Below, in pieces: positions 3,301-64,000 of a stretch of 64,000 bases of DNA. A model generated the notes under the pieces. The model saw nothing but the letters and a program-made list of their open reading frames with translations, did no database searches and was not told the origin of the DNA. The translations under genes and the position numbers were made by a program. Numbering within the stretch: the stretch's first letter is position 1; every line of letters starts with the position of its first letter. The DNA is from Mizuhopecten yessoensis (Eukaryota), in contig NW_018403833.1 in assembly GCF_002113885.1 (NCBI RefSeq), forward strand, positions 124,001 through 188,000. Direction: 5' to 3'.

Positions 3301-4405
3301 GTAAAATATATAAAGTTTATATTTGACTACTGAAATTATCATCGTCATTGTGGCTCACCTGTCCACAGTTTATTTGTAATAAGTTGGGTGGAATTTGTAT
3401 TGTGATGCTAATTGATTAAAACACTAAACAAGCCTGATCTTAATGTACAATAAAAGAATGCACCTCGTTCATTTTGCCACCTCGCTTGCCGCCAACATAT
3501 TTCAAGGTTCTTATTAGTTGTTTCTCTGGAGAATTCATGTTTACGTTTCTCTCAATTTTCTCGCCAAACCCCTTATAACGCCAGATGTTGCCAGTATAAA
3601 GAGAGTTGTTATATTGATAAAGGTACATTGTATTTTAATAAATACCTAAATAGGTTGAGTGGACAATATGTTTAATACAGTCTTTTTTAAAACTAAACAT
3701 GCTTGCTATACATGTATGAATAAATAAGGTATACATATCAAACCCCGTTTTACTGCCAGCTTTTGTTAAATGATATATTGGCAGTATAAAGAGATTTCGC
3801 GGTACATAAAGAGAGGTGTGTCCAGTTTACATGTTCACAGTGTGTATGTTGAGTAAAAACTAAAAAGGGGACCTTGAGATATGTTGCTCTTAAACAAAGT
3901 AGAAAATTATACGAATGTCAATTTAGCGATGGTTGCTGTAGGTACAAGGGGACAAAGGTGGGGAACTCCGTTTATTAGTTCTCTGGGCTATTTATAAATT
4001 CTGTCGGATTTTGCTTGTAATTGTGGGAGAATGTTGTGATGCCCGATTGCAAGTTTGACACAATTGTTGTTCTATTTTCGTGAAAATGTCCTCAAAGTTA
4101 ATCAGTACTCTTGTAATAATCTAAAATGTTAATTTTGACATGCTAAAAATAGCACACACGCCAAGTAGCACACACTACAATGCGTGTATCCATACCACGA
4201 GAAGAAATTTAATATAGTTAATATAGGACTAAAAGACATTATAAATGTTTTAAAAACATCACTTACCTTTTATTTCGAATCTTGGCACAAAATCTGGCCA
4301 AAGATAGTACACATTCCCGAAGGATTGGAGAGTCACGGTTATGTATACTAGCACTGTTAAGCTCAGAAATAGAAACCAACATCTACTAAGATTAAAAGCA
4401 GCCAT
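301..4405 (-). CDS. Carbohydrate sulfotransferase paralog 1 (CHST1/3/4/5-like Golgi type II membrane sulfotransferase), ~400 aa, intact
   Basis: Exons 4405-4267 (MAAFNLSRCWFLFLSLTVLVYITV, signal anchor), 2736-2686 (51-nt phase 1-1 stem exon), 1460-1289 (VLVVTYMRSGST 5'-PSB motif, YAFEPL) and 1141-301 (IKTIRL, VIHLLRDPRG 3'-PB motif, QYE, WR). All introns are GT-AG and the exons join in frame to 1203 nt. Confidence 0.9.
1477..2345. repeat. ~38-bp minisatellite with internal inversions in paralog 1 intron 2
   Basis: Unit ATATACAAAGTATCAATCTACATCTGTTACTATAGTAACAC contains the palindrome GTTACTATAGTAAC. Some units are reversed. Confidence 0.9.
3190..3320 (+). mobile_element. 5'-truncated SINE fragment with V-domain-like core
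   Basis: GGGTTTTCATCAGGTACTCCGGTTTCCTCCCACACAAAGAC matches the conserved GGT(A/G)CTCCGGTTTCCTCCCAC core of V-SINEs, followed by an A/T-rich tail. Confidence 0.55.
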
Positions 4406-9774: not shown

Positions 9775-10090
9775 ACAATATTGTAGATCTTCATTACTAC
9801 ATATTTATTAAATAAATTGTATCATATTAAAATACTATTTTTTATTGTGATGTATTAATCTTTATTACATTTTTACCAGTTAAATATCAGGAATCATCAA
9901 TTTGATAAAAACTTATATCTTAGCTTCAAGATATACGAAATGTTATTTCTTATATCAAGGCGTTTAAGAGTGGCTTATGTTAGCTAGATGGGGCGCTCTA
10001 TCAAATGTTGTGTATTATTAGTATTATTATTATTATTTTAACATGTAAAGATATCAGTTTTAGTATTCAGTATCAGAATTGTACTTTTTA

Positions 10091-10220
10091 TTCACTCGTA
10101 CGGCATATTATACTGATATTTTCATTCGCGCCTCGCGCTCGTGAAAAATATCGATATTCTGCTATACTCGTGAAATATATATATAGTATTCAATTAAAAG
10201 CCATGAAATATTCCCTATTT
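10091..10220. mobile_element. Isolated terminal hairpin fragment of a fourth family (D)
   Basis: TTCACTCGTA...GATATTTTCATTCGCGC-CTC-GCGCTCGTGAAAAATATC...TACTCGTGAA folds back with two TC/TC mismatches. Confidence 0.55.
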
Positions 10221-10705
10221 ACTGTAGGGGGTATTTTACGTGTGTAACCTCTTTGATCAAGTGACAAGATAGAGGATTCGACATTACTCAGGGAATATAA
10301 ACTATGGTCGCGTCAGCAAAATAATATGATGATATCTTCTGTTGTTGATGTATCCACGTTACTTGCTGTTTACTTTTGGTGTCTGTGCTAAAGATTCATT
10401 TATTTATTTCTTGTTTTGCATTTTATTTATTTATTTATTTATTCAATTTATATTTTACCGCAGTAGAAGTACATTGTAATGTCTCAAATTACAAGAGCAG
10501 GATATTAAGAACACTTTTCATCTGGCAAAGATTTGATTTGATACAATTTACAATAGTGTTTACTTTGTATTAAATAGTTTGCCCATTTACTTAAATAATT
10601 ATACTTATAAATTTTCAACATTACGGGATTGTTACACTTAACCATCACATCTTTTAGGTTGAACATTCACTTACATGTTATTAAAGGAAGAATAAGGATT
10701 TATTC

Positions 10706-12150
10706 CACACTCCCACCCACACTCACTCTCTCTCCCACTCACTCACTTACTCACTCTCTCTCCCACACTCCCACCCACATTCTCTCCCACACTCTATTTC
10801 CCACACACACTCACTCTCTCGCACTCACTGTCTCCCACTTACTCACTCTCTCTCCCACCCACACTCTCTCTCCCACACTCTCTCTCCAACACACACTCAC
10901 TCTCTCCCACTCACTGTCTCCCACTTACTCACTCTCTCTCCCACCCATACTCTCTCCTTCACTCACTCTCTCCCACACTCACTCTCTTCCACTCACTTAC
11001 TCACTCACTTACTCACTCTCTCTCTCTCCCACACTCTCTCCCACACTCTCTCTCCAACACTCTCTCTCCCACCCACACTCACTCTCTCTCCCACTCACTC
11101 ACTCTCTCTCCCATCCACACTCACTCTCTCTCCCTCAATTACTCACTCACTCTCTCCTACACTCACTCTCTCTCCCACATACTCACTCTCTCCCACACTC
11201 ACTCACTCTCTCCCATCAACACTCTCACTCACTCTCCCACTCACTCTCTCCCCCACACTCTCCTACAATCACTCTCTCCCACACACACTCACTGTCTCTC
11301 CCACACTCACTCTCTCCCACTCTCTTACTCACTCTCTCTCCCACACTCCCACCCACACTCACTCTCTCTCCCACATTCACTCTCTCCCACTCACTCTCTC
11401 CCACACACTCACTCCCCAACCCACACTTACTCCCACTCCCACCCTCCCACCCACACTCACTCTCTCTCCCACTCACTCACTCTCTCTCCCATCCACACTC
11501 ACTCTCTCTCCCTCAATTACTCACTCACTCTCTCCCACACTCACTCTCTTCCACTCACTTACTCACTCTCTCCCACACTCACTCACTCTCTCCCATCAAC
11601 ACTCTCACTCACTCTCCCACTCACTCTCTCCCCCACACTCTCCTACAATCACTCTCTCCCACACACGCTCACTGTCTCTCCCACACTCACTCTCTCCCAC
11701 TCTCTTACTCACTCTCTCTCCCGCACTCCCACCCACACTCACTCTCTCTCCCACATTCACTCTCTCCCACTCACTCTCTCCCACACACTCTCCAACCCAC
11801 ACTTACTCCCACTCCCACACTCCCACCCACACTCACTCTCTCTCCCACATTCACTCTCTCCCACTCGCTCTCTCCCACACACTCACTCTCACACTCTCTC
11901 CCAAACACTCTCACTCACTCTCTCTCCTTCACTCTCTCTCTCCCACTCACTTACTAACTTTCCCACACTCAGTCTCTCCCACACTCCCACCCACACTCTC
12001 TCTCTACCACCTACACTCCCACACTCCCACCCACTCTCCCACACTCTCTCTCTACCACCTACACTCCCACACTCCCACCCACCCTTATCAATTCACTCTC
12101 TCCCACCCACACTCACTCACTCTCTCCCCCACCAACACTCACTCTCTTCC
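10706..12150. repeat. C/T/A-rich low-complexity cryptic microsatellite (CTCTCTCCCACACTCA)n
   Basis: ~1.45 kb almost devoid of G, with internal higher-order duplication. Confidence 0.95.
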
Positions 12151-23578: not shown

Positions 23579-23804
23579 AAAACGGAAAGATGGAATAGGA
23601 TAAGGATGTAGGCAGACAGACATTAAGACATCATACAGACATGTCTAATTCAATGTACATATCATTCCAGCAAAAAACAGGGATAGCTCAAATGTTTTAA
23701 ACCAATCCACTTATTAAGAGAGACAGGATGTTTTGGAAGATTGCAATATTAGTAATATATTAGTTAGTTGGTCTTTAGAGATACATAGTTGTTATGGCGA
23801 TTGT

Positions 23805-24801
23805 ATTGAAGCTTCATCAGCTAATTAAGAGAGAAGAGATTATCCTGGGAATTCTATTGAAGCTTCATCAGCTAATTTAGAGAGAAGTGATTATCCTCCT
23901 GGGAATTCTATTGCAGCTTCATCAGCTAATTTAGAGAGACGTGATTATCCTGGGAATTCTATTGAAGCTTCATCAGCTAATTAAGAGAGAAGTGATTATC
24001 CTGGGAATTCTATTGAAGCTTCATCAGCTAATTTAAAGAGAAGTGATTATCCTCCTGGGAATTCTATTGCAGCTTCATCAGCTAATTTAGAGAGACGTGA
24101 TTATCCTGGGAATTCTATTGAAGCTTCATCAGCTCATTTAGAGAGAAGTGATTTTCCTGGGAATTCTATTGCAGCTTCATCAACTCATTTAGAGAGAAGT
24201 GATTATCCACCTGGGAATTCTATTGAAGCTTCACCAGCTAATTAAGAGAGAAGATATTATCCTGGGAATTCTATTGAAGCTTCATCAGCTCATTTAGAGA
24301 GAAGTGATTTTCCTGGGATTTATAATGCAGCTTCATCAGCTAATTTAGAGAGAAGTGATTATCCTCCTGGGAATTCTATTAAGCTTCATCAGCTAATTTA
24401 GAGAGAAGTGAGTATCCTCATGTGAATTCTATTAAGCTTCATCAGCTAATTTAGAGAGAAGATATTATCCTGGGAATTCTATTGAAGCTTCATCAGCTAA
24501 TTTAGAGAGAAGTGATTATCCTCATGGGAATACATTTAGCTTCATCAGCTAATTTAGAGAGAAGTGATTATCCTCCTGGGAATTCTTCTAAGCTTCATCA
24601 GCTAATTTAGAGAGAAGTGATTATCCTCATGGGAATACATTTAGCTTCATCAGCTAATTTAGAGAGAAGTGATTATCCTCATGGGAATTCTATTGAAACT
24701 TCATCAGCTAATTTAGAGAGAAGATATTATCCTGGGAATTCTATTGAAGCTTCATCAGCTAATCTAGAGAGAAGTGATTATTCTGGGAATTCTATTGAAG
24801 C
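23805..24801. repeat. ~51-55-bp minisatellite
   Basis: Unit GAAGCTTCATCAGCTAATTTAGAGAGAAGTGATTATCC(TCC)TGGGAATTCTATT, about 19 copies. Confidence 0.95.
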
Positions 24802-42149: not shown

Positions 42150-45100
42150 ATGGATTTTGTAATGTTTAGGACATGTTTTATGCTCCTGGTGACATTTACT
42201 GTACTTTTTGTGTTCACCATGCTCCTCACCGTCCGTCATGATGGATTTATTCGGGTGGGGCCTCTCAAGATTCGGTTATCTACAAGTACAGGTAAGACAA
42301 TCGTGTGTTTGTGTGTATTGTTATAAATCTACCGATATCAGTTATCTGTATTCTTTTAGCTGTAAAGCGCCTTGATGTAAATGATTTCGAATTATACAAA
42401 GTGTATCATACACACTATGCCTATCATTAGTGTCTGTTATACAACATAAAACGCTTTATGACATGATTACCGTATAACTCAAGAAATGCAAGCATATCAT
42501 GTATTTGCTTATAAAATATGACAAAGTGTGACGTCATTAAATGATAAATAAAATAATGTCCACATTAAAGCATGACGTCACAATGGAGACAATGGTAAAA
42601 GTGTCAAAACCGGAAAACTTTACTTAAGAAAATGACAAAAAAAATGTGTTTTTGCAAATTTCAAAAAATGAAAAATTATCTTGTATAAATTTCCACTTTA
42701 AATAGAAAATGATTAAATGATTACGTTCCTGAAGGAGACGGAGATTTGTATATATTCATGGGTTAGAGGAGCTTCAGTTATTAAACTGGGCGTTGAGAGA
42801 ATCTCGAGACAGAGATTTTCTTTCTTTTTCATTTTTTGCTTTGTAGTAGCAACTGGAGATTGAGAGTATGTGGAGGGGGAAGGATGTTAACTGGAGTCCT
42901 AGTTTGAGTTAGGGTTAAGAAGATTTATTCTCATGCGAAAATTACTGGAGTATTTTGTTACTTCCTTTTTGTTAGGATTTTTTTACTCATGTTTGGGTGT
43001 TGGAGGGTGCAATTGGAAATCGGCCTTACGTAGGGGATAGGAGTCGGGGTTCCGATGACTTTCTTTCGGTGATGCATTTCTTTTGTTTTCCATTTCCTGT
43101 TTTTCGTGGCGAGAAAGTTTTTATTTGATATATTGAAATATTTGAGTTTACTTTTACAGAAACATACAAAGTTAAATTACGTAATACAAGTGTGCCCGTC
43201 CTCATCTTTACCTACATGCGAAGTGGTTCTACACTGACAGGCGACATCCTTCAGCATCACCCAGGCAGCTTTTACGTGTTCGAACCACTGCGTTACATAG
43301 ACGAAGATATCGACAAGGCTCGAACTGTGCGCTTTTATAACGGCACCACAAGGTACTTGTAAGTCATATAAATCACTCTCACTTCCTTAAAATCCTGTTC
43401 ACACATAGTTATGTAAATTACTCTCACTTCCCTAAAACCCTGTTCACACATAGTTATGTAAATTACTCTCACTTCCCTAAAACCCTGTTTACACATAGTT
43501 ATGTAAATCACTCTCACCTCCCTAAAATCCTGTTCACACATAGTTATGTAAATTACTCTCACTTCCCTAAAACCCTGTTCACATATAGTTAAGTAAATCA
43601 CTCTCACTTCCCTAAAACCCTTTTCACACATAGTTATGTAAATCACTCTCACTTCCCTAAAACCCTGTTCGCATATAGTTATGTAAATCACTCTCACTTC
43701 CCTAAAACCCTGTTCACACATAGTTATGTAAATTACTCTCACTTCCCTAAACCCCTGTTCACATATAGTTAAGTAAATCACTCTCACTTCCCTAAAACCC
43801 TTTTCACACAAAGTTATGTAAATCACTCTCACTTTCCTAAAACCCTGTTCGCATATAGTTATGTAAATCACTCTCACTTCCCTAAAACCATGTTCACATA
43901 TAGTTATGTAAATCACTCTCACTTCCTTAAAATTCTGTTCACACATAGTTATGTAAATCACTCTCACTTCCTTAAAATCCTGTTCACATATAGTTAAGTA
44001 AATCACTCTCACTTCCCTAAAACCCTTTCTCACATAGTTATGTAAATCACTCTCACTTCCCTAAAACCCTGTTCGCATATAGTTATGTAAAGTCACTCTC
44101 ATTTCCCTAAAACCCTGTTCGCATATAGTTATGTAAATCACTCTCACTTCCCTAAAACCCTGTCAATATATGGTTTTATTAATCACCTTTACTTTCGTAA
44201 AATCCTTCCAATATAAAGCCATATAAATCACCTTTACTTCCTTAAAATCCTGTCTATATAAAAACCAAATTAATCAATTTTACTTCCGTAAAATCCTGTC
44301 AATATAAAGCCATATTAATCACCTTTACTTCCTTAAAATTCTGTCTATATAAAGCCTTATTTATCATCTTTACTTCCGTAAAATCCTGTCTATATAAAGC
44401 CATATTAATCACATTTACTTCCTTAAAATCCTGTTTATATAAAGCCATATTTATCATTTATCACTATCACTTCCTAAAGATCCTGACAAAATAAATAGTC
44501 ATAATAATCACTCAAACATCCGTAAAATTCTTTCAATATACAGTTATAGGAATCACTCTCAATTCCTATAAATAAATCATCTCATTATATAGCCATATTA
44601 ATTACTCACACATCCTTATAATCCTTTTGATATATAGTTATATCAAACCCTCCCACTTCCTTCAAATCCTGTCAATATATATTTATATTAATTAATCTCA
44701 CTTCCTTCAAATCCTCTCAACATATATAACATACATTGGTATATACTATAGGGTTATTAGTTAGCTAATGCATATTGGACCAGTTATTAGGCCAAGGTCT
44801 GTCATATTGGCCCAAGGCCGCAGGCCGAGGGCCAATGTGACAGACCGAGGCCTAATAACTTTGCCAATATGGAATTAGCTGATTAATGACACTTTTATTA
44901 ATTTACTACTTGTATATACTTGGCAATAATCTTAAATTAACAAAAACTAAAGTGATTAAATTCAACAAATTTAATAACAATTAATTTAAAATATTGTTCA
45001 GCTGTTTTTTCTTGTGAACTATACTCGGACTGACTGTACTTCGCTTTTTTCTGGGGAGGCATTACATTGATATTTATGGTACCTCCTGATATATTTGCAC

Positions 45101-47516
45101 CACTTACAGGGAAAAGGGCAGACAATCTTGTAGTTCAGAATTCACCATTGAGTATGTACTACTAATATATCATGAAGCAATGTTTGGCTTAACTCGCTAA
45201 ACACTTCCTATCTAGTAATGTCATGCATTAAACTGCTAACATGTCATCGCCGATAAGTCTAGAAATATTCAGAATAATATGGCGTGCATTCGATTGGCGT
45301 GTTATCAATATTGGCCCAGTTTATCCCGTATTGGCCCAGTTCTTCGATATTGGCCCAGTTTATCCCATATTGGCCCAGTTTGTTATGATATTGATTGGTC
45401 AGTTTTCTCATATTATTGTCAATGCGCAAGTAGTTAATTAATAATAAATATTACAAATAACTTCATCTATGTATATCAGACTGCTATTTGATTGATGTTT
45501 GGAATAAAATGGCGTTGGGATACGTTTTCTCTACCTGTTTGGCATGGGAGAATGAAAAATGAATTACCTGGCAATATTTCACGAATTGATTTTTTTTTTT
45601 AATTTTCAACTACATATGAATTTCTGACCTATTCAGGATCATCACTAGTAAGTCAAATTCTACAGAAAAGTATTATATATATATATATATTTGCACTAAG
45701 CTTGAGCCAGCTGAGGTAACATACAACGGTAGTGAAGACAACATGCAAGTGAACTGTTTTATACTATTTATGCTCGTACGATTAAGTAAAAGTATTGTTG
45801 CTCTGTACTTACTCCACACGTCGGAGTAAACCCTTGGTCACCTTTTTTAAATGGACATGTCCGAAATCATTACAGAAAATCTGATGGTTATCCAACGCTT
45901 AAAAGTCAGTCTCTATATAAGGGTCAATGACTTCTTTTTGTGTTTGCTTCCTGCTTTCATTATGATTCGTCATTCAGGTTTGGTTTTCTCATGATGTATG
46001 GCTGTATAGTTTAATTCACCTTTGTACGTTATCACTTGTTACTGAAAAATCATGTTTGAATAATAATTTAAGATCATGCAGTATAATCTTTCTGTTTTAA
46101 TTTTTTTTTCACTGGTCAAAGACAACAAATTATACTTAAGAAACTCACACTTATTATATCGTTTCCGTTGAAAGAAAACGATACAAACGCAAAAATAAAA
46201 AATGAAAATTAACAAATAAATCCGTTTATTTCATTGATTGGGGAAGGAGAAATAAGATGTATTAACAGATGATTTATTGTTTAACCAATAAATGGTTACA
46301 GTGTGTGATCTCTATTCAGTTTTGGGACACTAAGATCGTGGACAACGCTCCATGTTAAAACATATCTTAATTTGCCAAAGTAGGTGCCATATTTAAAAAT
46401 CAAAGATGACGCCTAATAATAGCCAGGAATCAGCAAATGAAACCATTTTGACCAACTTGATTAGCACAAAGCCGATTAATTTTGCCTCTATATATTGCTA
46501 TTTATCTTTAAAATTCAGTAAATTAAATTACACAGATTAATTCATATAGTCCGTTTATGGTAACATATTGGTTAGTTGGTTATTGGTTTTTGTCGAGACT
46601 TATTCTGATCTTTGGGTTTTACCCGCTATTCTCCAAATATGTATCATATATTGAGAGTCTTCATTTTACCTTAGCGTCTTTGTTTTAATACCACAGAGGG
46701 ATTCGCAAGCAGCAGAAAGTATGGATCCATGCTGAAATGATGTACAGATGGTTAACTTGTGACTTTCGCTTTATCAACATCAAAGACCTGACTAGCCAGT
46801 TCTTGGGATCATTCTCCTTGACATCGAAAAATTACGCCAAATGTATTCATGACAATAAAACAACAATAAGAGCCGTGAAGAGATGTATTACCTTGTTAGA
46901 AAAACCGTGTGCCAGGAGTGATTTAAGAATCGTTAAAACCATACGAATGGCCATGGAATCTGTGAATCTGTTATTACAGCGGTTACCGGACCTGAAAGTC
47001 ATATACTTGATTAGGGATCCTCGAGGAAAGCTGTCTTCTCAAATCATGGCTTATGGTCAAAACTGGGGCGCTGTCATGACGCTAGCGAAGGAAACATGTG
47101 ACAGAATGATGGTAGATACTAACATGATGAGTGAACTTAAACAAAAATATCCAGACAGAATTCGTCTTCTTTTGTACGAGACGTTAGCCAGACGACCTGT
47201 AGAGACGTCTGGTCGAATTTTTGAATACTTAAATATTAATTTTACTAATAGCATTATGCTTTCTATTCGCTCGTTAACATCGGGTGCTCCTGGTAAAAGA
47301 GATAGATGCATTTGGTGCTCGAAGCGGGGTAATTCACGAAAAATAGCATACAATTGGAGAATTAAAACGAATGTTTTGCACCTTGATTACATAGACCAGA
47401 CCTGTGCCAGTGTCTATAAAAAGGTTGGATATGTTCTTTTCAAAGACTCGCATGACTTTCGAAACTTGAACAAACCGTTGCTGGAATACTCGCCATTCAC
47501 AGAAGATGCCTTGTAG
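42150..47516 (+). CDS. Carbohydrate sulfotransferase paralog 7, ~384 aa, intact
   Basis: Exons 42150-42291 (TM CFMLLVTFTVLFVFTMLLTV), 43160-43352 (VLIFTYMRSGST, YVFEPL) and 46697-47516 (VIYLIRDPRG, CIWCSKRGNS). 1155 nt in frame. Confidence 0.9.
43365..44720. repeat. 45-bp minisatellite in paralog 7 intron 2, homogeneous to ~44160 then progressively degenerate
   Basis: Unit AATCACTCTCACTTCCCTAAAACCCTGTTCACACATAGTTATGTA. Confidence 0.95.
44745..45445 (-). mobile_element. Internally deleted hairpin element in opposite orientation (family C), possibly Crypton-like, with a coding remnant
   Basis: Hairpin at ~44753-44890 with apex GGCC-GCA-GGCC. Inverted repeat TTATTAATTTACTACTTG / CAAGTAGTTAATTAATAA. 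ATATTGGCCCAG arm copies at the far end. Minus-strand remnant LFPVSGANISGGTININV. Confidence 0.65.
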
Positions 47517-49143: not shown

Positions 49144-52100
49144 TTATGATCCATTCACGGGTGGGTTTGTCGATATTGGTGGCGGAGCGTAAGGAGAGGT
49201 ATTCATCACACTTTCGTACGAGGGAGGTGGTTTGAAACTGTCTGGATAGCTTCCGCTTGTGTTTGAATACATGACAGGGTTTCTCAAACCCTGTGCTTGT
49301 GTGGGCGCGCTATAACCTTATAAAGTAAAGAGATGCGAACATTATTACTGCACAATGACACTATGAATTTTCATTAAGGACGATCGAATTACTTTTGAAC
49401 CCTGGAAAGATAATTGATTTACATTTTGTGAACGTCTCAGATTAATATATTCTCAAAATTGCCCGACTTTCAACACAGGAATCAGTCATATATAATGAGG
49501 ATTACTACAATATAATGTCTTTGTAAATAGGTATATCAATATCAGCATTTATAGATAGCAAAATAGTCTACAATGATATGAAATAGCTACTGTTAATTAT
49601 AAAAATACAATTTACAGCCATAAGGTAACGCAAGATATCACAAAACAATTATGGTGTATGATTGTTTTTACAAAATTAAATTTTACATAGACATCAATTT
49701 TAGGTATTGTATTTCCTGTGGACGAAGCGTATGATTGATCATACAGATGAATACATAATATTACATAACCAATATATTTAATAAATATCGCTATATATTC
49801 TTTACATATTGCAACATTTATTTCCAATATCCCACTCTATCAAACAGAACTAAATAACTGATGATAATCTCGATATATTTGAAAATTGGGTGGGGACAGC
49901 AAAATGGTTTTGAAATTATGTTTTACCTATAGACAACAACAATATTAACGAAATAAGTTCAAGAATTTCCTTTCTTACATTAAGATGTCTAACTAACATC
50001 GATGTGATTTCGATTCTGATATAGTTTGGTAATGAACTGTTAGTGAACTAATCCTGAGGTGAGGGAGATATTTCTATATCCATACCAATTACAGGCAACA
50101 AGCCAGGATTTAACGACAGATTTAATTGGTTAAAAATACAATGGACCACATAAAAGTTTTTTTCACAACCATTTATCATTTTTTCATAGGGAACAATTTA
50201 TTCGTGTTTAAACGATGAAAATGTAATGACTTATTAAAAAAGTATATCTAATGTTATTATATATAAAATATGTCGTTGTTTATTCTTTAAGGGTAGCGAC
50301 TACCACAGATGTAACAAAAAAAAGGGTGTTTTCATACACAATTCTCAATTCCAATCGATAAAAGGATGTAATCAAAAATGAATTGGCATATACATAGCTA
50401 CAATGTGTCACCTGTGATAAAAGTAAAGATTACCATCTTACTAGAGATAAGATTATTGAGTGAATGTCAGAGTTCAGAACTGCAGGATAATGTCTAACCT
50501 CAAGTCATAGTATGAATGTCTTATCGTGGTAAGAGTTACAGATCATTTTCTTACCTGCGGTCAGAATTACAGATTATTGTCTTACCTGATGTCAGAATTA
50601 CAGGTGAAAGTCGTCGGGCTCTGACCCTTGAAATGAGCACTATGGCGAGTATCAGGAAAAACAAACCGCCAACACATCCGCCGACTGCGAGACCAATGGT
50701 CATTGTGTCTGTAAGTGAAATGGTACATTTTTGTAATAAACAGCACGTTTTCAATATAGAAGAAACAAATCGTTACAGGCATCAAAACGGACTGCAACAT
50801 AAGATCTGATAAGGCAGTTTGTGTTTAAAGTATTGGGAAAAACGGAGAAAGTAGACCTTTCATGGCGGGATACCCATGTCCCAAATCTTAGGATGTCTAA
50901 CATATAGTGTCATACAACAGAGAAAGAAGACTTACAGGGTGGGATACCCATTTCTCTTACCCTGGACAGATGCATCCGCACTTTTACCGGTGTGAGATTT
51001 CCTTGTCTCACCCTAGGGTTGAGACGGGGGTGGGGTCCCCTATTTATAACAATGGCATGACGTCACTTCAACAATACAATGACGTCACGTCAACAATCCA
51101 TCAACGTCACGTCAACCTTGAATTTAGCATGTAACGTTTTCGTTACATTGTGTGTATGATACACAATGGGAGAACAGGGTAAGAGAAAAGAATCATTCAC
51201 CCCCTTGTGGGTTAGACAGGGGAATCTCAACCCTCGGGAAAAGATTCTTAAGTTGCCAAACACTCGACAAAGCATCGTGTTTGGCAACTTAAGAATCTTC
51301 CCCCTCGGGTTGAGATTCTCCCATCTCACCCCAAGAGGGTGAAAGATTTTATTAGTCCCAAATCTTAGGATGTCTAACATATAGTGTCATGCAACAGAGA
51401 AAGGAGACTTACAGGGTGGGATACCCATGTCCCACATCTTAGGATGTCTAACATCTAGTGTAAAGATAGTCTCAGTTTTCCTTACATTTACTATTGAAAA
51501 TATAACATATTACTGCATGTTTGGAAATACAGAAATTAATAAAAATATGTCCTTATTTTAAAATATAGCAATTTAACAATTAATTTAATTTAGTTTAACA
51601 ATCATCATTACAATAAATGATACACACGATATCATAGTTAAAACTATGAACATACAATTTTATTGCAATATAACTTTCAATGAAAGTGCATAAGATAGCA
51701 TTAATATGATCACTTAAAATGTTCACTTTTGATAATTAACCATTATGATGACTGTAAGATACTTTTAATCAGACCGTAAGTGGGTGAAATGTTTTCACAT
51801 TTAATATATTTCACTTTAATCATTGAGTACTGTCTGTTACCACTGAAATATAACTTTTGAGGATTAATCAATGACATATGAAACAAAACGTTTTACTAGT
51901 GAAATGAAAAGCATGTCCGATTTTCTTCAATATTAGAAAATCTGTCTCACTTGTGAAATTAATACAATATGTTGTATATTGTTTTGTTTTGACGATGTGG
52001 TACTGTAATAATTTGTCCCTGTGTGTGGTTGACATGCTGTAATTTACAGTGGACTCGTGGAAGGGTTTCTTTGTTGGAAAGCTGAAAATGTATGCAAAAT

Positions 52101-55072
52101 AATACGAATCATAACGTACAATTGTATGTCATAGTGGCTGTGACTTTGAGGCGAATTTCAGCAGTCTGTCCTGATGAATGTGTGGGTGTAGACTCGAACA
52201 TGATATCCACATAGTCATCAGAGTCTCCACACCAACTTGAAGGCGACTGGTAGCAGGAATAGACCTGATTGGATAAAACGTAGATCATTTACAGCAAATC
52301 ATACATACAACAATAGCACAGCCAAACTTACCTGAGAAGGAGGGCTGATGCAATTGCTTGAAACTGAGTTGGCTATTTGTGTTCAGAAACGAACAATAAG
52401 GGCAGGTACCATGTTTTGTCACAGATTCACGTTATATAATCAAAGATAAATTAGTCCCTCTTTGTAACTTATTAATTTTTCTTTATAAATACAAAGTCTT
52501 TACACTTAATTAAAACATAAAAGTTTATTAAAAAGTAAACAATATATATATATATGTGTTTACGTAAAAATTGATCAGGAAAACGATTATTATAAATAAA
52601 CAAACAATCGATATTCTTTGCCTTATTTTGTCACTTATTACTTTACTTTTGAATCTAAGGACACTTTATATAATGAAAATATAATTTCAATTGACTAAAA
52701 GCGAAAATACTTTTGATTATGTGATCTTTATTGTTGTCTTAAAATCAGGTTTACCACCAAACGTCGTCCTAAAATAACATCTCATTTAATTATTCTAACA
52801 AACTTGGCAATGGTCGAAGTCATACTTATATCGTACTAATATTCAGGAAAATTCCAAATTGACAAATAACGTACGGCGGCTAAGATTGTGCTAATCTTCA
52901 GTAGGCAAATAAGAATATTTCTTAACCTAAAAGGAAAACTTATTTAATTTCAAAATGCTTTTTTAAATGAAGAAAAAACTGTTTATTTACATAAATAAAG
53001 AACAACGCAATTACAAGACTTTTTATAAGCAAAACATGTTTTGTGCTATTCCTGTAGTTATATAGTGCATGTTTCCAGAGGTTAAAATGACTTCAAATTA
53101 TTCCCAATAATATATAAACAAATTTTATTACTGGTAGCGTAGTGGAAAGGTTCCCATATATATAGTTTTGAGGGAATCCCAGCTACAGAGATACATATTA
53201 TGTTGTTTTATTTGTGGATCATACAATTATAATAAATACGTTTTCTTTGTTCATTTTATATACTTAATAGTGGCAATGACATGAGAAGCAAAGATACAAC
53301 ACAGAAACTGGGACGCTCGACCTTAATGCATAGATAAGATTGATCGGCTTAAAACAGCTGTGTACCAACCATATGCATATGTAATAGATTTGAATCGATG
53401 TTTCGGATTATGTTAACATAACACGGTACGATCCGATTGTACTACATGTATAACAATACCTGTAGCCGCGTCATAAGTGCACGTTATAGCAGGCGCATAT
53501 TTGAGTATAAAGCTTACATATATATTTCTCTCATTTCCCTGTGTGTAAGATAGAACTGTCCAGAGTAGGAAATTTCTATCTTACACATCATTTCACGTGA
53601 CGTTACGTCACAACGGCTCAAACAATGACGTGGCGTCACGAATTTGGAAATCTCCGACGCCGCAATGCGGAAAGGGCGACGTGAGGGAATCAAAACCTTT
53701 CATGATATATTTACCATGGCATATACGTTAGAAAGATGTAATTACCTTTCATTGTTTGTAAATATGGGGTATGCTTAATCTGACTGACAGATTCATTTTC
53801 GTCTAAAAAGCTTAGGAGGAGATTGATATTTTCAAAATGGTGGCCAATCGAAACACATTTTTATGGTCTCTGAGCTTATTCTGGTAGTCTAATTGAGAGA
53901 AAAATACTCTTCCATGCCCAAGGGTGTATGATAGGGAAATTCCACCCTCGGGATTTTCAAATTTTGCAAAACCCTCGGCAAAGCACGGGTTTTTCCCTAA
54001 TTTGAAAACCTCTTTGGTTGCACTTTCCTATCCTACATCCATGGGCATGAAATAGTCTTATAATATTTTGATCAAATATACATATAGATTTACTCATTAT
54101 TATAAGGCAAACTACAAATTAAACGAATACAAGAGTGAAAATTTTAATACAGGAATTATTTCACGTGTAGAAGTTAGTGAAATATGAATAGAAATATAAA
54201 ACAGGACTTTGTTCAATACATTATTAAAATGACCTATCAACCTTTTACCAGTTACGAACCAAACGAAACGGAATTGTATATTATCTAGTAATTGTTTCCT
54301 AGTATATTTGAAAACAAACGTAGGATAGTTCATAAATCCGTTTTTTTTTATGTAAGAACAGTGTCGCCATATTGTGTAACTACCTCTGAAAGGACGCTGA
54401 CAACTCCTTTTTCTAACTTGACCTTTGCCCCGCAGTTCGGAACTTTCCACGTCTCTGCCTCTACACAGACCTTGTACTCGTTCATGTAACCATCATCACG
54501 GCCAATGAAACCAATGGAGCAATAATTAGGTATCACGCCACCGTTCCACACAATCGTGTACGTGTCCTCCTTATTCACATGATGTATTTTATAGTTTTCA
54601 CAATCATTTCCGATGTACACTGTAAAGAAAAATGTAACAAACAATATGAGAATTAACAAAAGATTTCTATGAAGTAAAAACAATGAGTTAGGAGCATAAG
54701 TATTAAATAAATAAAGCAACAATGCGAAATCGTCACTTCCTATCATATTGTGGTCATTCCTTAAATATGTAATGAGAGATAAAATTGTCAAGGTGCATCA
54801 TGTACCCTGAGGAACAACAATGTTAACCTTTCTCCTAATACAAACTCTGGGAACAAATACTACTGAAGCCAACAAAAAAGCACACTACGATAAATATCAC
54901 CATTATTGATTACTTTTGACTATGATTGGGATAGGTTTAAGAAGTGTGTATTACATTGATAGAGAAAGATGAAATGTGTGAGCTTACGTGTTTGGTCACT
55001 GGAATATTGTGTTGACAACCCAATCATGGATATCCAAATCATCAGAATGATATTCTGTCCCATTGTCATCAT
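49144..55072 (-). CDS. Uncharacterised single-pass type I membrane protein, ~253 aa: signal peptide, 6-Cys beta-rich (CUB-like) ectodomain, TM helix, PPxY cytoplasmic tail
   Basis: Exons 55072-54988 (MMTMGQNIILMIWISMIGLS), 54619-54384, 52264-52120, 50708-50586 (IGLAVGGCVGGLFFLILAIVLI-SRVRARR) and 49316-49144 (KPPPSYESV...NGS*). All GT-AG, phases 1,0,1,1, 762 nt in frame. The CUB-like label is inference from the Cys and beta-strand pattern. Confidence 0.82.
50952..51354. mobile_element. Non-autonomous DNA element with ~160-bp terminal hairpin (family A, copy 1)
   Basis: Left end TTCTCTTACCCTG is an inverted repeat of internal CAGGGTAAGAGAA. The hairpin at 51191-51348 follows. Both ends are near-identical to 62700-63264 while the interiors differ. 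Confidence 0.8.
53521..54064. mobile_element. Older non-autonomous hairpin element with the same architecture (family B)
   Basis: Short inverted repeat TATATTTCTCTCA / TGAGAGAAAAATA, then a degenerate hairpin at 53906-54056 with apex CCCTCGGC-AAA-GC. TGACGT motifs lie internally, as in family A. Confidence 0.6.
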
Positions 55073-62699: not shown

Positions 62700-63264
62700 A
62701 CCTTTTCTCTTTACCCTGGACAGATTTATCCTTACTTTTACCGGTGTGAGATTTCCATGTCTCACCCTAGGGTTGAGACAAGCTACGCGTGCTCTTTGCA
62801 CGTTCTCCACAATAAACCTGACGTCACTGATGTGACCCGGAAGAAGAACTACTTTTATGAGGTCACACACTTATACACAGGTTCGTCTGCTAATATTGTC
62901 ATGTTTACATTTGACATCAAAGAAGACGGGATTGATTTTAAAATGTTTAAAATCGGTGATCTGGTAAATGTTGGATCATATGATGCGTGAAGCGTCTGAC
63001 GCATACATATAATATTAATACGCTATCCACGTGTTCCTGTTTACAAACAATATGGTTGATCTTAAACTTAGGCTGGAACAACAGGGTAAGAGAAAAATAA
63101 TCATTCACCCCCTCGGGGATGAGATAGGGGGATTGCAACCCTCGGGGGAAGATTCTTAAGTTGCCAAACACTCGGCAAAGCCTCGTGTTTGGCAACTTAA
63201 GAATCTTCCCCCATCGGGTTGAGATCCCCCTATCTCAACCCCAAGAGGGTAAAAGATTTCATTA
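62700..63264. mobile_element. Non-autonomous DNA element with ~160-bp terminal hairpin (family A, copy 2)
   Basis: Shares ~75 bp at the left end and ~185 bp at the right end with 50952-51354. Hairpin at 63099-63258 with apex CTCGGC-AAA-GCCTCG. Confidence 0.8.
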
Positions 63265-64000
63265 ATCCCTCAACAACAGTTTGGCTGCTACTTAAAAACG
63301 TTAGAAAAACTATATACAGCTTTGAATTTGTGCATGTTTTTTTGCGTTTTCGTCTGGAAATTATTACTCGCGCGGTGTAGATTCGTGAAAAGAAGGTCGG
63401 TCAATGCAAAAAACACAGTGAAACGTTTAAATACATTGTAATCCTGTGCTACATGTGCATAGGTTGAAATACCACTGTGGTATTTTAAAATGAAGACCTT
63501 TGTGTCCGTATGTACATTTTAAAAGGAAACCGAGATAACGTGAATGAAAGGCAATTTTCGTTGCATGTACCCCTTTATTCATGATTATATTTTTAATAAA
63601 GAGAATGATACGTTGTACGTTTTATTACTTTATGTTTTTCGTCTCTAACCAAAGTCATAATACTGTAAATGTGGAATTTATTTTTCGGTGTAGAAATTTG
63701 TGTAAATCAGCCAAAAAAATATCCACACACGAATAGATTACATAGATCATAAATAGAATGTGTAGTTTTCAGAACCAATGCCAACGCTAAAATTTCCTCA
63801 CATCGACTATTTCAAAAAGTCCCTTCATGAACATTTCCACGTGCGAAGATTTCCACTTTTACAGGAATACCTGGAACAGGAAATCTTCGCACAACTGCAG
63901 AATTCGCGGTGGAATCAAACCGCGAAAAGCTCGAAAATGGCACATCCGAAAAAATATAATAATCATCTGGCAGATTTCGAAGATGTAATCTATATTTAAG

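Follow-up and report, generated by a model that had tools for sequence, protein, structure and literature searches.

The long hairpins described here are very probably the conserved 3' end module of Crypton-type transposons, elements whose sole gene encodes a tyrosine recombinase of the DUF3504 type. The window, by which we mean the whole 64,000-nt stretch of DNA that was analyzed (G000:C506:124001-188000, from a genome of ~988 Mb in 82,659 contigs), contains five gene-less, non-autonomous derivatives of such elements, belonging to four families. The elements are built in a constant order: a 5' terminal stretch of 9-13 nt, the interior (occupied in autonomous copies by the recombinase ORF, in either orientation), a second, inverse copy of the 5' terminus, then a short A-rich spacer, a hairpin of 110-160 nt and a short T-rich tail. 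The best overall explanation, and one that we consider probable, is a Crypton end module bearing polar mismatches that are read in folded form.

The hairpins of the window and their mismatch code

All five hairpins named in an earlier, sequence-only reading of the window were recovered by an inverted-repeat search and DNA folding, with z-scores calculated against 200 dinucleotide shuffles for single-stranded DNA. The strongest folds are those of the two hairpins of family A (A1, 63104-63253, -69 kcal/mol, z -16.5; A2, 51195-51344, -59 kcal/mol, z -14.4), together with those of family C (44750-44893, -50.7 kcal/mol, z -14.1) and family B (53906-54055, -36.6 kcal/mol, z -7.75). The hairpin of family D (10088-10177) folds weakly, at -12.7 kcal/mol and a z of only -2.2. 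An ungapped scan of the whole window yielded no further hairpin of the CTCG/CTCG type. The central claim of the sequence-only reading, that the five share one mismatch design, was borne out on refolding: the sole regular interruptions of each hairpin are 2x2 internal loops in which CTCG, or a CpG-decayed form of it, occupies both arms of the same strand. It follows from this arrangement that one strand folds with TC/TC bubbles and the other with CGAG/CGAG, that is, with tandem G.A mismatches. When CGAG faces CGAG, two sheared G:A pairs form in a stable block (PMC10085684), and under standard DNA parameters the GA strand is the more stable of the two by a small 0-5 kcal/mol.

Family A is represented by many copies in the genome, of which 22 full copies of ~530 bp were aligned at 84-91% identity. 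The copy A1 (62705-63267, plus strand) is a non-autonomous, Crypton-derived element of 563 nt that aligns from end to end with the 21 others. It begins with TCTCTT... after a flanking T, and it ends in ...ATTARTC before a flanking T/C. Its 5' terminal inverted repeat, TTCTCT(T)TACCCTG at 62705-62718, is the inverse complement of the subterminal 3' repeat CAGGGTAAGAGAA at 63082-63094, directly 5' of the hairpin, with which it pairs once the ends are joined. The hairpin itself (63099-63258, plus strand) has the apex GC-AAA-GC at 63175-63181 and CTCG/CTCG bubbles at two sites. The first places CTCG on either side of the apex (63171-74 and 63182-85); the second opposes 63141-44 to 63213-16 and reads ATCG in this copy, CTCG in the consensus. 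An outermost apparent site in family A, CTCG against CAAG, is a decayed ordinary pair and no conserved bubble. The second copy, A2 (50952-51357, plus strand), is shorter, differs in its interior and carries its hairpin at 51191-51348, with a decayed first site (51263-66 against 51274-77) and a second site at 51233-36 against 51304-07.

The remaining families are each present once. The family B element (53526-54066, plus strand) is an eroded copy whose 5' terminus, TTCTCTCATT, is the inverse of 53891-53901 and whose hairpin, at 53906-54056, has its sites at 53974-77 against 53984-87 (CACG here, CTCG in the consensus) and 53947-50 against 54010-13. Family C lies on the minus strand (44743-45251; hairpin 44753-44890, loop GCA), so that the GA strand is the plus strand of the window and the sites appear there as CAAG/CGAG, at 44813-16/44826-29 and 44793-96/44846-49. 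Family D, of low copy number and decayed, is seen as a weakly folding hairpin at 10091-10174 (plus strand) with TTCG/CTCG and CTCG/CTCG bubbles at 10125-28/10138-41 and 10095-98/10167-70. Elsewhere in the window, a CT/CA-rich array with a GC skew of -0.75 (10705-12147) and large arrays of 51-bp units (23800-24801) and 44-bp units (25434-27548) account for its anomalies of composition.

Consensus sequences were built genome-wide from 22 copies of family A, 21 of family B and 11 of family C; the genomic copies sampled for the latter two numbered 20 (77-80% identity) and 10 (76-86%), respectively, and family D has two decayed homologues in the genome, both of which keep the outer CTCG/CTCG. The consensus of A and of B reads CTCG/CTCG at both sites, that of C reads CTCG/CTTG and CTTG/CTTG, where CTTG is the CpG-decayed form, and the eroded CACG of the window copy of B is restored to CTCG in its family consensus. 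Across the seven family hairpins, including those of the recombinase-encoding groups described below, 13/13 2x2 loops read (C/T)T(C/T)G on both arms. The mismatches thus belong to the consensus, as the sequence-only reading had supposed, and are not products of decay: they are kept in A, B and C and in relatives elsewhere, and all 13 loops are of one type. On this comparative evidence, the CTCG/CTCG mismatches are in all likelihood under selection.

Other parts of the earlier description need adjustment. The five hairpins all exist, but those at 63099-63258 and 51191-51348 belong to a single family, as two of its copies, and the families were not all unrelated in sequence as had been claimed. 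Families A and B have in common the apex CTCG-GC-AAA-GC-CTCG (CTCGGCAAAGCCTCG) and arms that are 68% identical, and they are therefore related; the claim stands for C and D, which cannot be aligned to A or B. A 3-nt loop with a mismatch 3-5 bp away is likewise not universal. Measured from the apex, the first site of the consensus hairpins is found at 2-4 bp and the second at 19-31 bp; the exception is the recombinase-encoding family G4, which has an ATAT loop and its first site 13 bp out. Since the spacing between sites ranges from 16 to 29 bp across families and loop size varies too, the geometry of the hairpin is not rigid. The argument from stabilizing GNA triloops applies only to family C, whose loop is GCA; the loops AAA and CTC fall outside that class. 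The far end does carry the partial arm copy that had been noted; more precisely, it is a stretch of 9-13 nt that inverts the sequence immediately 5' of the hairpin.

Similarity between the left arms of unrelated families is only 42-60%, but within the hairpins 79-94% of arm positions still pair. Changes at single sites are consistent with this pairing being physical. Among ~216 site observations there are five in which TC has flipped to GA, or to its decayed form, leaving the site perfectly paired (copies L006, L018, L019, L084 and L096), where by a rough estimate well under 0.1 double transversions would be expected. We read these flips as corrections templated by the opposite arm, and if that reading of the copies is right, the arms would pair in vivo at least sometimes. 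At L087:3504 and 3515, reads and contigs of other copies have the apex variant CTCGCCAAAGGCTCG where the apex of this G4 copy is AT-rich, from which the tip of the hairpin seems to be exchangeable between subfamilies.

Recombinase-encoding elements, their ends and their insertions

The link between hairpin and recombinase came from matches to the 5' 274 nt of family A alone, at 92-95% identity, which led to an element of ~3 kb at L063:137-3170. This element combines the 5' 274 nt of family A (95% identity) with the 3' hairpin part of the same family, and its interior encodes QRICH1-like and Phage_integrase domains; three additional copies of it have decayed in different ways. By sequence, family A is an internal-deletion derivative of this DUF3504 tyrosine recombinase element. 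Family A is the only case in which a gene-less family and a recombinase element have both ends in common, and families B, C and D share the end design. No recombinase remnant was found within the window.

A search with the L063 protein found more than 150 places in the genome, including several groups with intact ORFs. Three of these groups end in long CTCG/CTCG hairpins in every unit: G4 (unit L087:1423-3578, G000:C143; a 506-aa ORF; at least 10 copies at 98-100% identity), G2 (unit L088:1268-3754; 640 aa; at least six copies at 98-99%) and G1 (unit L089:1233-3627; 595 aa, antisense to the element; at least six copies at 94-97%). Their units measure 2.15-2.49 kb and each has one ORF longer than 200 aa, with no reverse transcriptase or second enzyme; internal-deletion derivatives are present for all three. 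The sequence-only reading had envisaged a Crypton-like tyrosine recombinase as the partner, as opposed to a DDE transposase or a Helitron, and the partners recovered, namely that of family A with the same ends and G1, G2 and G4 with their hairpin ends, do encode DUF3504 tyrosine recombinases. A fourth DUF3504 group, G3 (L090:1501-3304), showed no CTCG hairpin in its repeated unit or in the regions upstream and downstream. Beside an N gap in the same locus (L090:659-1261, G000:C5567) there is a repeat of at least 592 bp, with more than 40 copies at 99% identity, that starts with a hairpin of 80-nt arms without CTCG bubbles and that occurs as head-to-tail pairs 17 nt apart at two loci.

The recombinase ORFs of the groups are 38-49% identical to each other. 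PF12012 (DUF3504) scores above the Pfam cut-off in all four intact ORFs (E 1.6e-33 to 3.5e-21), and PF00589 is matched as well, above its cut-off in G4 and G3. In an alignment of eight sequences, including homologues from coral, oyster, Pecten and acorn worm, R250, K283, R385, H408 and Y417 are invariant, and the His of HxxR is replaced by Thr in several. The only solved relative by sequence is QRICH1.

Relatives beyond this genome were sought by scanning metagenome contigs with the recombinase alignment, which gave 80 loci encoding them. These loci hold 27 hairpins with 34 2x2 loops, among them 12 TC/TC, 3 GA/GA (in reverse orientation) and ~5 decayed forms. The CTCG code is found in ten of the loci, beside recombinases 33-52% identical to that of G4. 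One of them, L119, has the CTCGGCAAAGCCTCG apex; in another, L110, the base of the G4 hairpin is kept and the inner arms are entirely different and still complementary.

The two ends of an element are matched to one another. The 5' end of families A, B, G1, G2 and G4 opens with 9-13 nt that are the inverse complement of the sequence directly 5' of the hairpin, and a terminal inverse repeat is also present in the metagenome loci L110, L120 and L131. The terminal/subterminal pair varies between families (TTCTCTTACCCTG, TTCTCTCATT, TTCTCCCAC and TTATTATATAAT), and its two copies co-vary. When the 3' end is folded joined to the 5' end, the stem gains 9-13 bp in A, B, G1, G2 and G4, and a few tail bases are left unpaired beside the junction. 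Motifs of the TGACGTCA type, which are CRE-like, turn up repeatedly in families A and B, in the 5' third of the element (window 62842-62849, 51059-51110 and 53593-53640) and upstream of the G2 ORF (L088:1360-1370); they may be promoter remnants or protein-binding sites.

A target duplication is normally absent. All 20 of the family A copies compared (20/20) are preceded by T and followed by T or C, and none has the short (4-6 bp) terminal direct repeats characteristic of fungal Cryptons, having T or T/C on each side only. A minority of insertions, at loci including L028, lie between long direct duplications of the flank, of 43 bp (L087), 37 bp and ~74 bp (window). The filled allele of the G4 copy at L087 has the 43-bp duplication at L087:1381-1423 and 3579-3621, and an empty allele, with 1374 joined to 3573, was seen in another sample's DNA run and in an RNA-library run. 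Since the empty allele in other samples has a single 43-bp copy, the duplication arose at insertion. The ~74-bp repeats around A2 (50878-50951 and 51355-51428) are ambiguous, because the flank there is a local tandem repeat. Duplications of 37-74 bp are not predicted by a simple recombinase crossover. Judged by its copies, which are 98-100% identical, and by the one insertion that is polymorphic, G4 is probably still active.

Tandem arrays accompany several copies. In the window, an array of ~30 units of 45 bp (43361-44715) stops 28 nt short of the family C copy, on the hairpin side of that copy, and 2/4 copies of G4 lie inside arrays of 23-bp and ~40-bp units (L104/L105, G000:C1165; L108/L109, G000:C2300). 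Such arrays beside element copies could reflect a target preference, or could be generated next to the hairpin. Others are satellite-like and born from element ends: at L010 (G000:C76700:390015-391621) the first ~69 nt of family A are repeated in ~28 tandem copies with a 53-bp period, and at L065:1266-2681 a long family A copy has an internal array of 66-68-bp units.

Reading of the end module and its rivals

The arms evolve freely and yet remain complementary, and CTCG is kept on both arms of the same strand at two or three fixed places. Under the explanation that we prefer, the recombinase would recognize the module when it is folded, whether into a single-strand hairpin or an extruded cruciform, and the polar mismatches would let it tell apart the strands and the ends. 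Joining of the 3' to the 5' end, as in an excised circle, would complete the stem and set the crossover point at its base, beside the few unpaired tail bases. Recognition as folded DNA is somewhat favored by the co-varying arms, by the stem that the joined ends complete and by the TC-to-GA flips. A single-strand mechanism with exchange of one strand, like that of attC or the CTX phage, is by analogy a possibility that we entertain with some doubt. Just as tentative is its fullest form, in which this animal Crypton lineage would move as a self-encoded integron cassette, with a folded hairpin as its site, CGAG/CGAG blocks that choose the strand and one strand pair exchanged.

A serious rival, if in our view an unlikely one, accepts the same Crypton end module and has it read as ordinary duplex DNA, with the arms serving as inverted binding sites and CTCG as direct-repeat contacts that give polarity, much as the spacer does in lox or FRT. 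The usual site of a tyrosine recombinase consists of an asymmetric core between inverted binding arms, and CTCG in direct orientation within a palindrome would indeed break the symmetry of the duplex. It also agrees with duplex recognition that no 3'-to-5' circle junction was found in four runs ill suited to show one, three of them consisting of contigs and the raw reads being RNA. A search of the genome found no head-to-tail A-A junctions of family A. What duplex recognition leaves unexplained is the complementarity of arms 55-80 nt long despite near-random similarity between families, the terminal repeat that extends the same stem, and the conversion of single sites to the complement of the opposite arm.

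The remaining rivals concern the enzyme and the mismatches themselves. A first reading took the elements for Helitron2/Helentron HINEs, given their inverse repeat at the termini, their 3' hairpin and their T flanks; it was dropped when the Rep loci proved to be unlinked and the 5'-only hits led to the recombinase element. In its strongest version, which we now consider improbable, these would be rolling-circle elements with the recombinase as a passenger, and a Rep/helicase acting in trans would use the hairpin as a terminator. In their asymmetric terminal inverted repeats, their hairpin at the 3' end, their 5' T and their insertion between T's, the elements do fit the published definition of Helitron2 (PMC3627910). 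Variable target duplications are known for Chlamydomonas Helitron2 (PMC3627910), the tandem arrays of the family A 5' part resemble HINEs, and the genome has at least 56 Helitron_like_N matches. Against this, four recombinase lineages and 10 metagenome relatives have their own co-diverged ends, a single intact ORF and invariant catalytic residues, which argues that the recombinase is not a passenger. The hairpins here are also far longer, at 110-160 nt, than the ~20-60 nt of HINEs, and no Rep locus examined shares sequence or hairpin type with families A-D: 30 Rep loci and a 20-kb Rep/helicase locus have no sequence in common with them, and 117 kb of Helitron Rep loci contain no TC/TC loop. 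This control is incomplete, since the ends of no Rep element could be defined (the C217 element extends past 20 kb). A hairpin at L061:2880-2944, considered as the end of that Rep element, belongs instead to a separate repeat of ~450 bp (L061:2550-2993, G000:C217), of which over 35 copies exist (82-87% identity) and which here lies upstream of a Rep/helicase open frame of 2064 aa; the repeat is HINE-like, with a terminal hairpin of 25-bp arms, a TGACGTCA palindrome and tandem copies elsewhere. Least credible of all is that the mismatches are neutral, either as inherited decay of one ancestral hairpin or as a feature at the RNA level, such as a 3' UTR stem-loop or a small-RNA precursor. CTCG contains a CpG and readily decays, its variants CTTG and CTCA are common, and most families have their hairpin in sense orientation downstream of the ORF, as neutrality would allow. 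The motif nevertheless persists in the consensus and across recombinases only 33% identical, where the surrounding arms have been replaced; G1 and the metagenome locus L184 have their hairpin antisense to the ORF and on its upstream side; and raw RNA reads on the G4 copy at L087 cover its 5' and 3' parts, mostly from a deletion form, and leave the hairpin uncovered.

Significance and comparison with known systems

No class of eukaryotic DNA transposons is less well understood than the Cryptons, for which, to our knowledge, no transposition assay exists. They have also given rise to several conserved vertebrate genes, namely KIAA1958, the ZMYM genes and QRICH1. Their boundaries are hard to call, because published work saw no terminal structures in animal Cryptons, and we found no description of a Crypton hairpin or palindrome in the searchable literature. 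A defined end module would permit automatic annotation of the elements and of their very numerous gene-less derivatives, and it offers a handle on element recognition and movement, with pairing, strand and spacing as concrete targets for mutation. Repeats that have been filed as Helitron2 or HINE by structure alone may belong to another class of enzyme. If the folded-strand mechanism is true, animals join bacterial integrons and filamentous phages, the only systems from which this recombination principle is known; if the cassette-like reading is true, this would be the first eukaryotic tyrosine-recombinase system with a structured single-strand site, and part of the structure-based 'Helitron-N/HINE-like' annotations in bivalves would be Crypton derivatives.

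Among known systems, CTX-type phages provide a precedent in which mismatches choose a strand. At their attP(+) site, the XerCD tyrosine recombinases act on a one-strand hairpin, mismatches in the stem limit exchange to one strand pair, and replication resolves the product. That system is bacterial and employs host recombinases and a fixed dif site, and the likeness to the present elements is by analogy only. The closest structural counterpart is the integron attC site, where joining of the cassette ends completes the hairpin, and unpaired features together with a purine skew select the bottom strand (PMC5027507). Here, too, an imperfect hairpin sits at the 3' end of the mobile unit, varies in sequence while structure and unpaired features are kept, gains its full stem only once the 3' and 5' ends of the unit join, and has strands that differ in purine content. 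The differences are nevertheless considerable. The host is eukaryotic; the recombinase is of the DUF3504 type, not IntI, and is carried by the element itself; the mismatches are symmetric and 2x2, not single extrahelical bases; and the hairpins reach 110-160 nt. The RYYYAAC/GTTRRRY core is absent, the terminal repeats being TTCTCT..., TTCTCCCAC... or TTATTATATAAT, and single-strand recombination is for the present elements a conjecture.

The likeness to Helitron2, Helentron and HINE elements (PMC3627910), including the oyster Cg_HINE (PMC7492417), covers the asymmetric inverted repeats, the subterminal repeat followed by a 3' hairpin, the T at the 5' end, T-rich insertion sites where a target duplication is usually lacking (with exceptions of 37-74 bp) and associated arrays of tandem repeats. 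The present elements differ from them in that the partner is a tyrosine recombinase and not a Rep/helicase, and in having a hairpin that bears the CTCG code and has several times the length. The authors who described Cg_HINE could not link these elements to any autonomous Helentron (PMC7492417), and the apex and end motifs of the present families were not found in the legible supplements of that work. The affinities of the coding elements lie with CryptonA: their single ORF, for a tyrosine recombinase, combines DUF3504 with a QRICH1-like N domain, reverse transcriptase is lacking, internal-deletion derivatives abound, and their recombinases are related to the domesticated genes KIAA1958, ZMYM and QRICH1. 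Terminal repeats of any kind were not found in the animal Cryptons described previously (Kojima and Jurka, 2011; PMC3212892), whereas the ends of the elements considered here are defined by a terminal/subterminal inverse repeat and a long hairpin with polar CTCG/CTCG mismatches.
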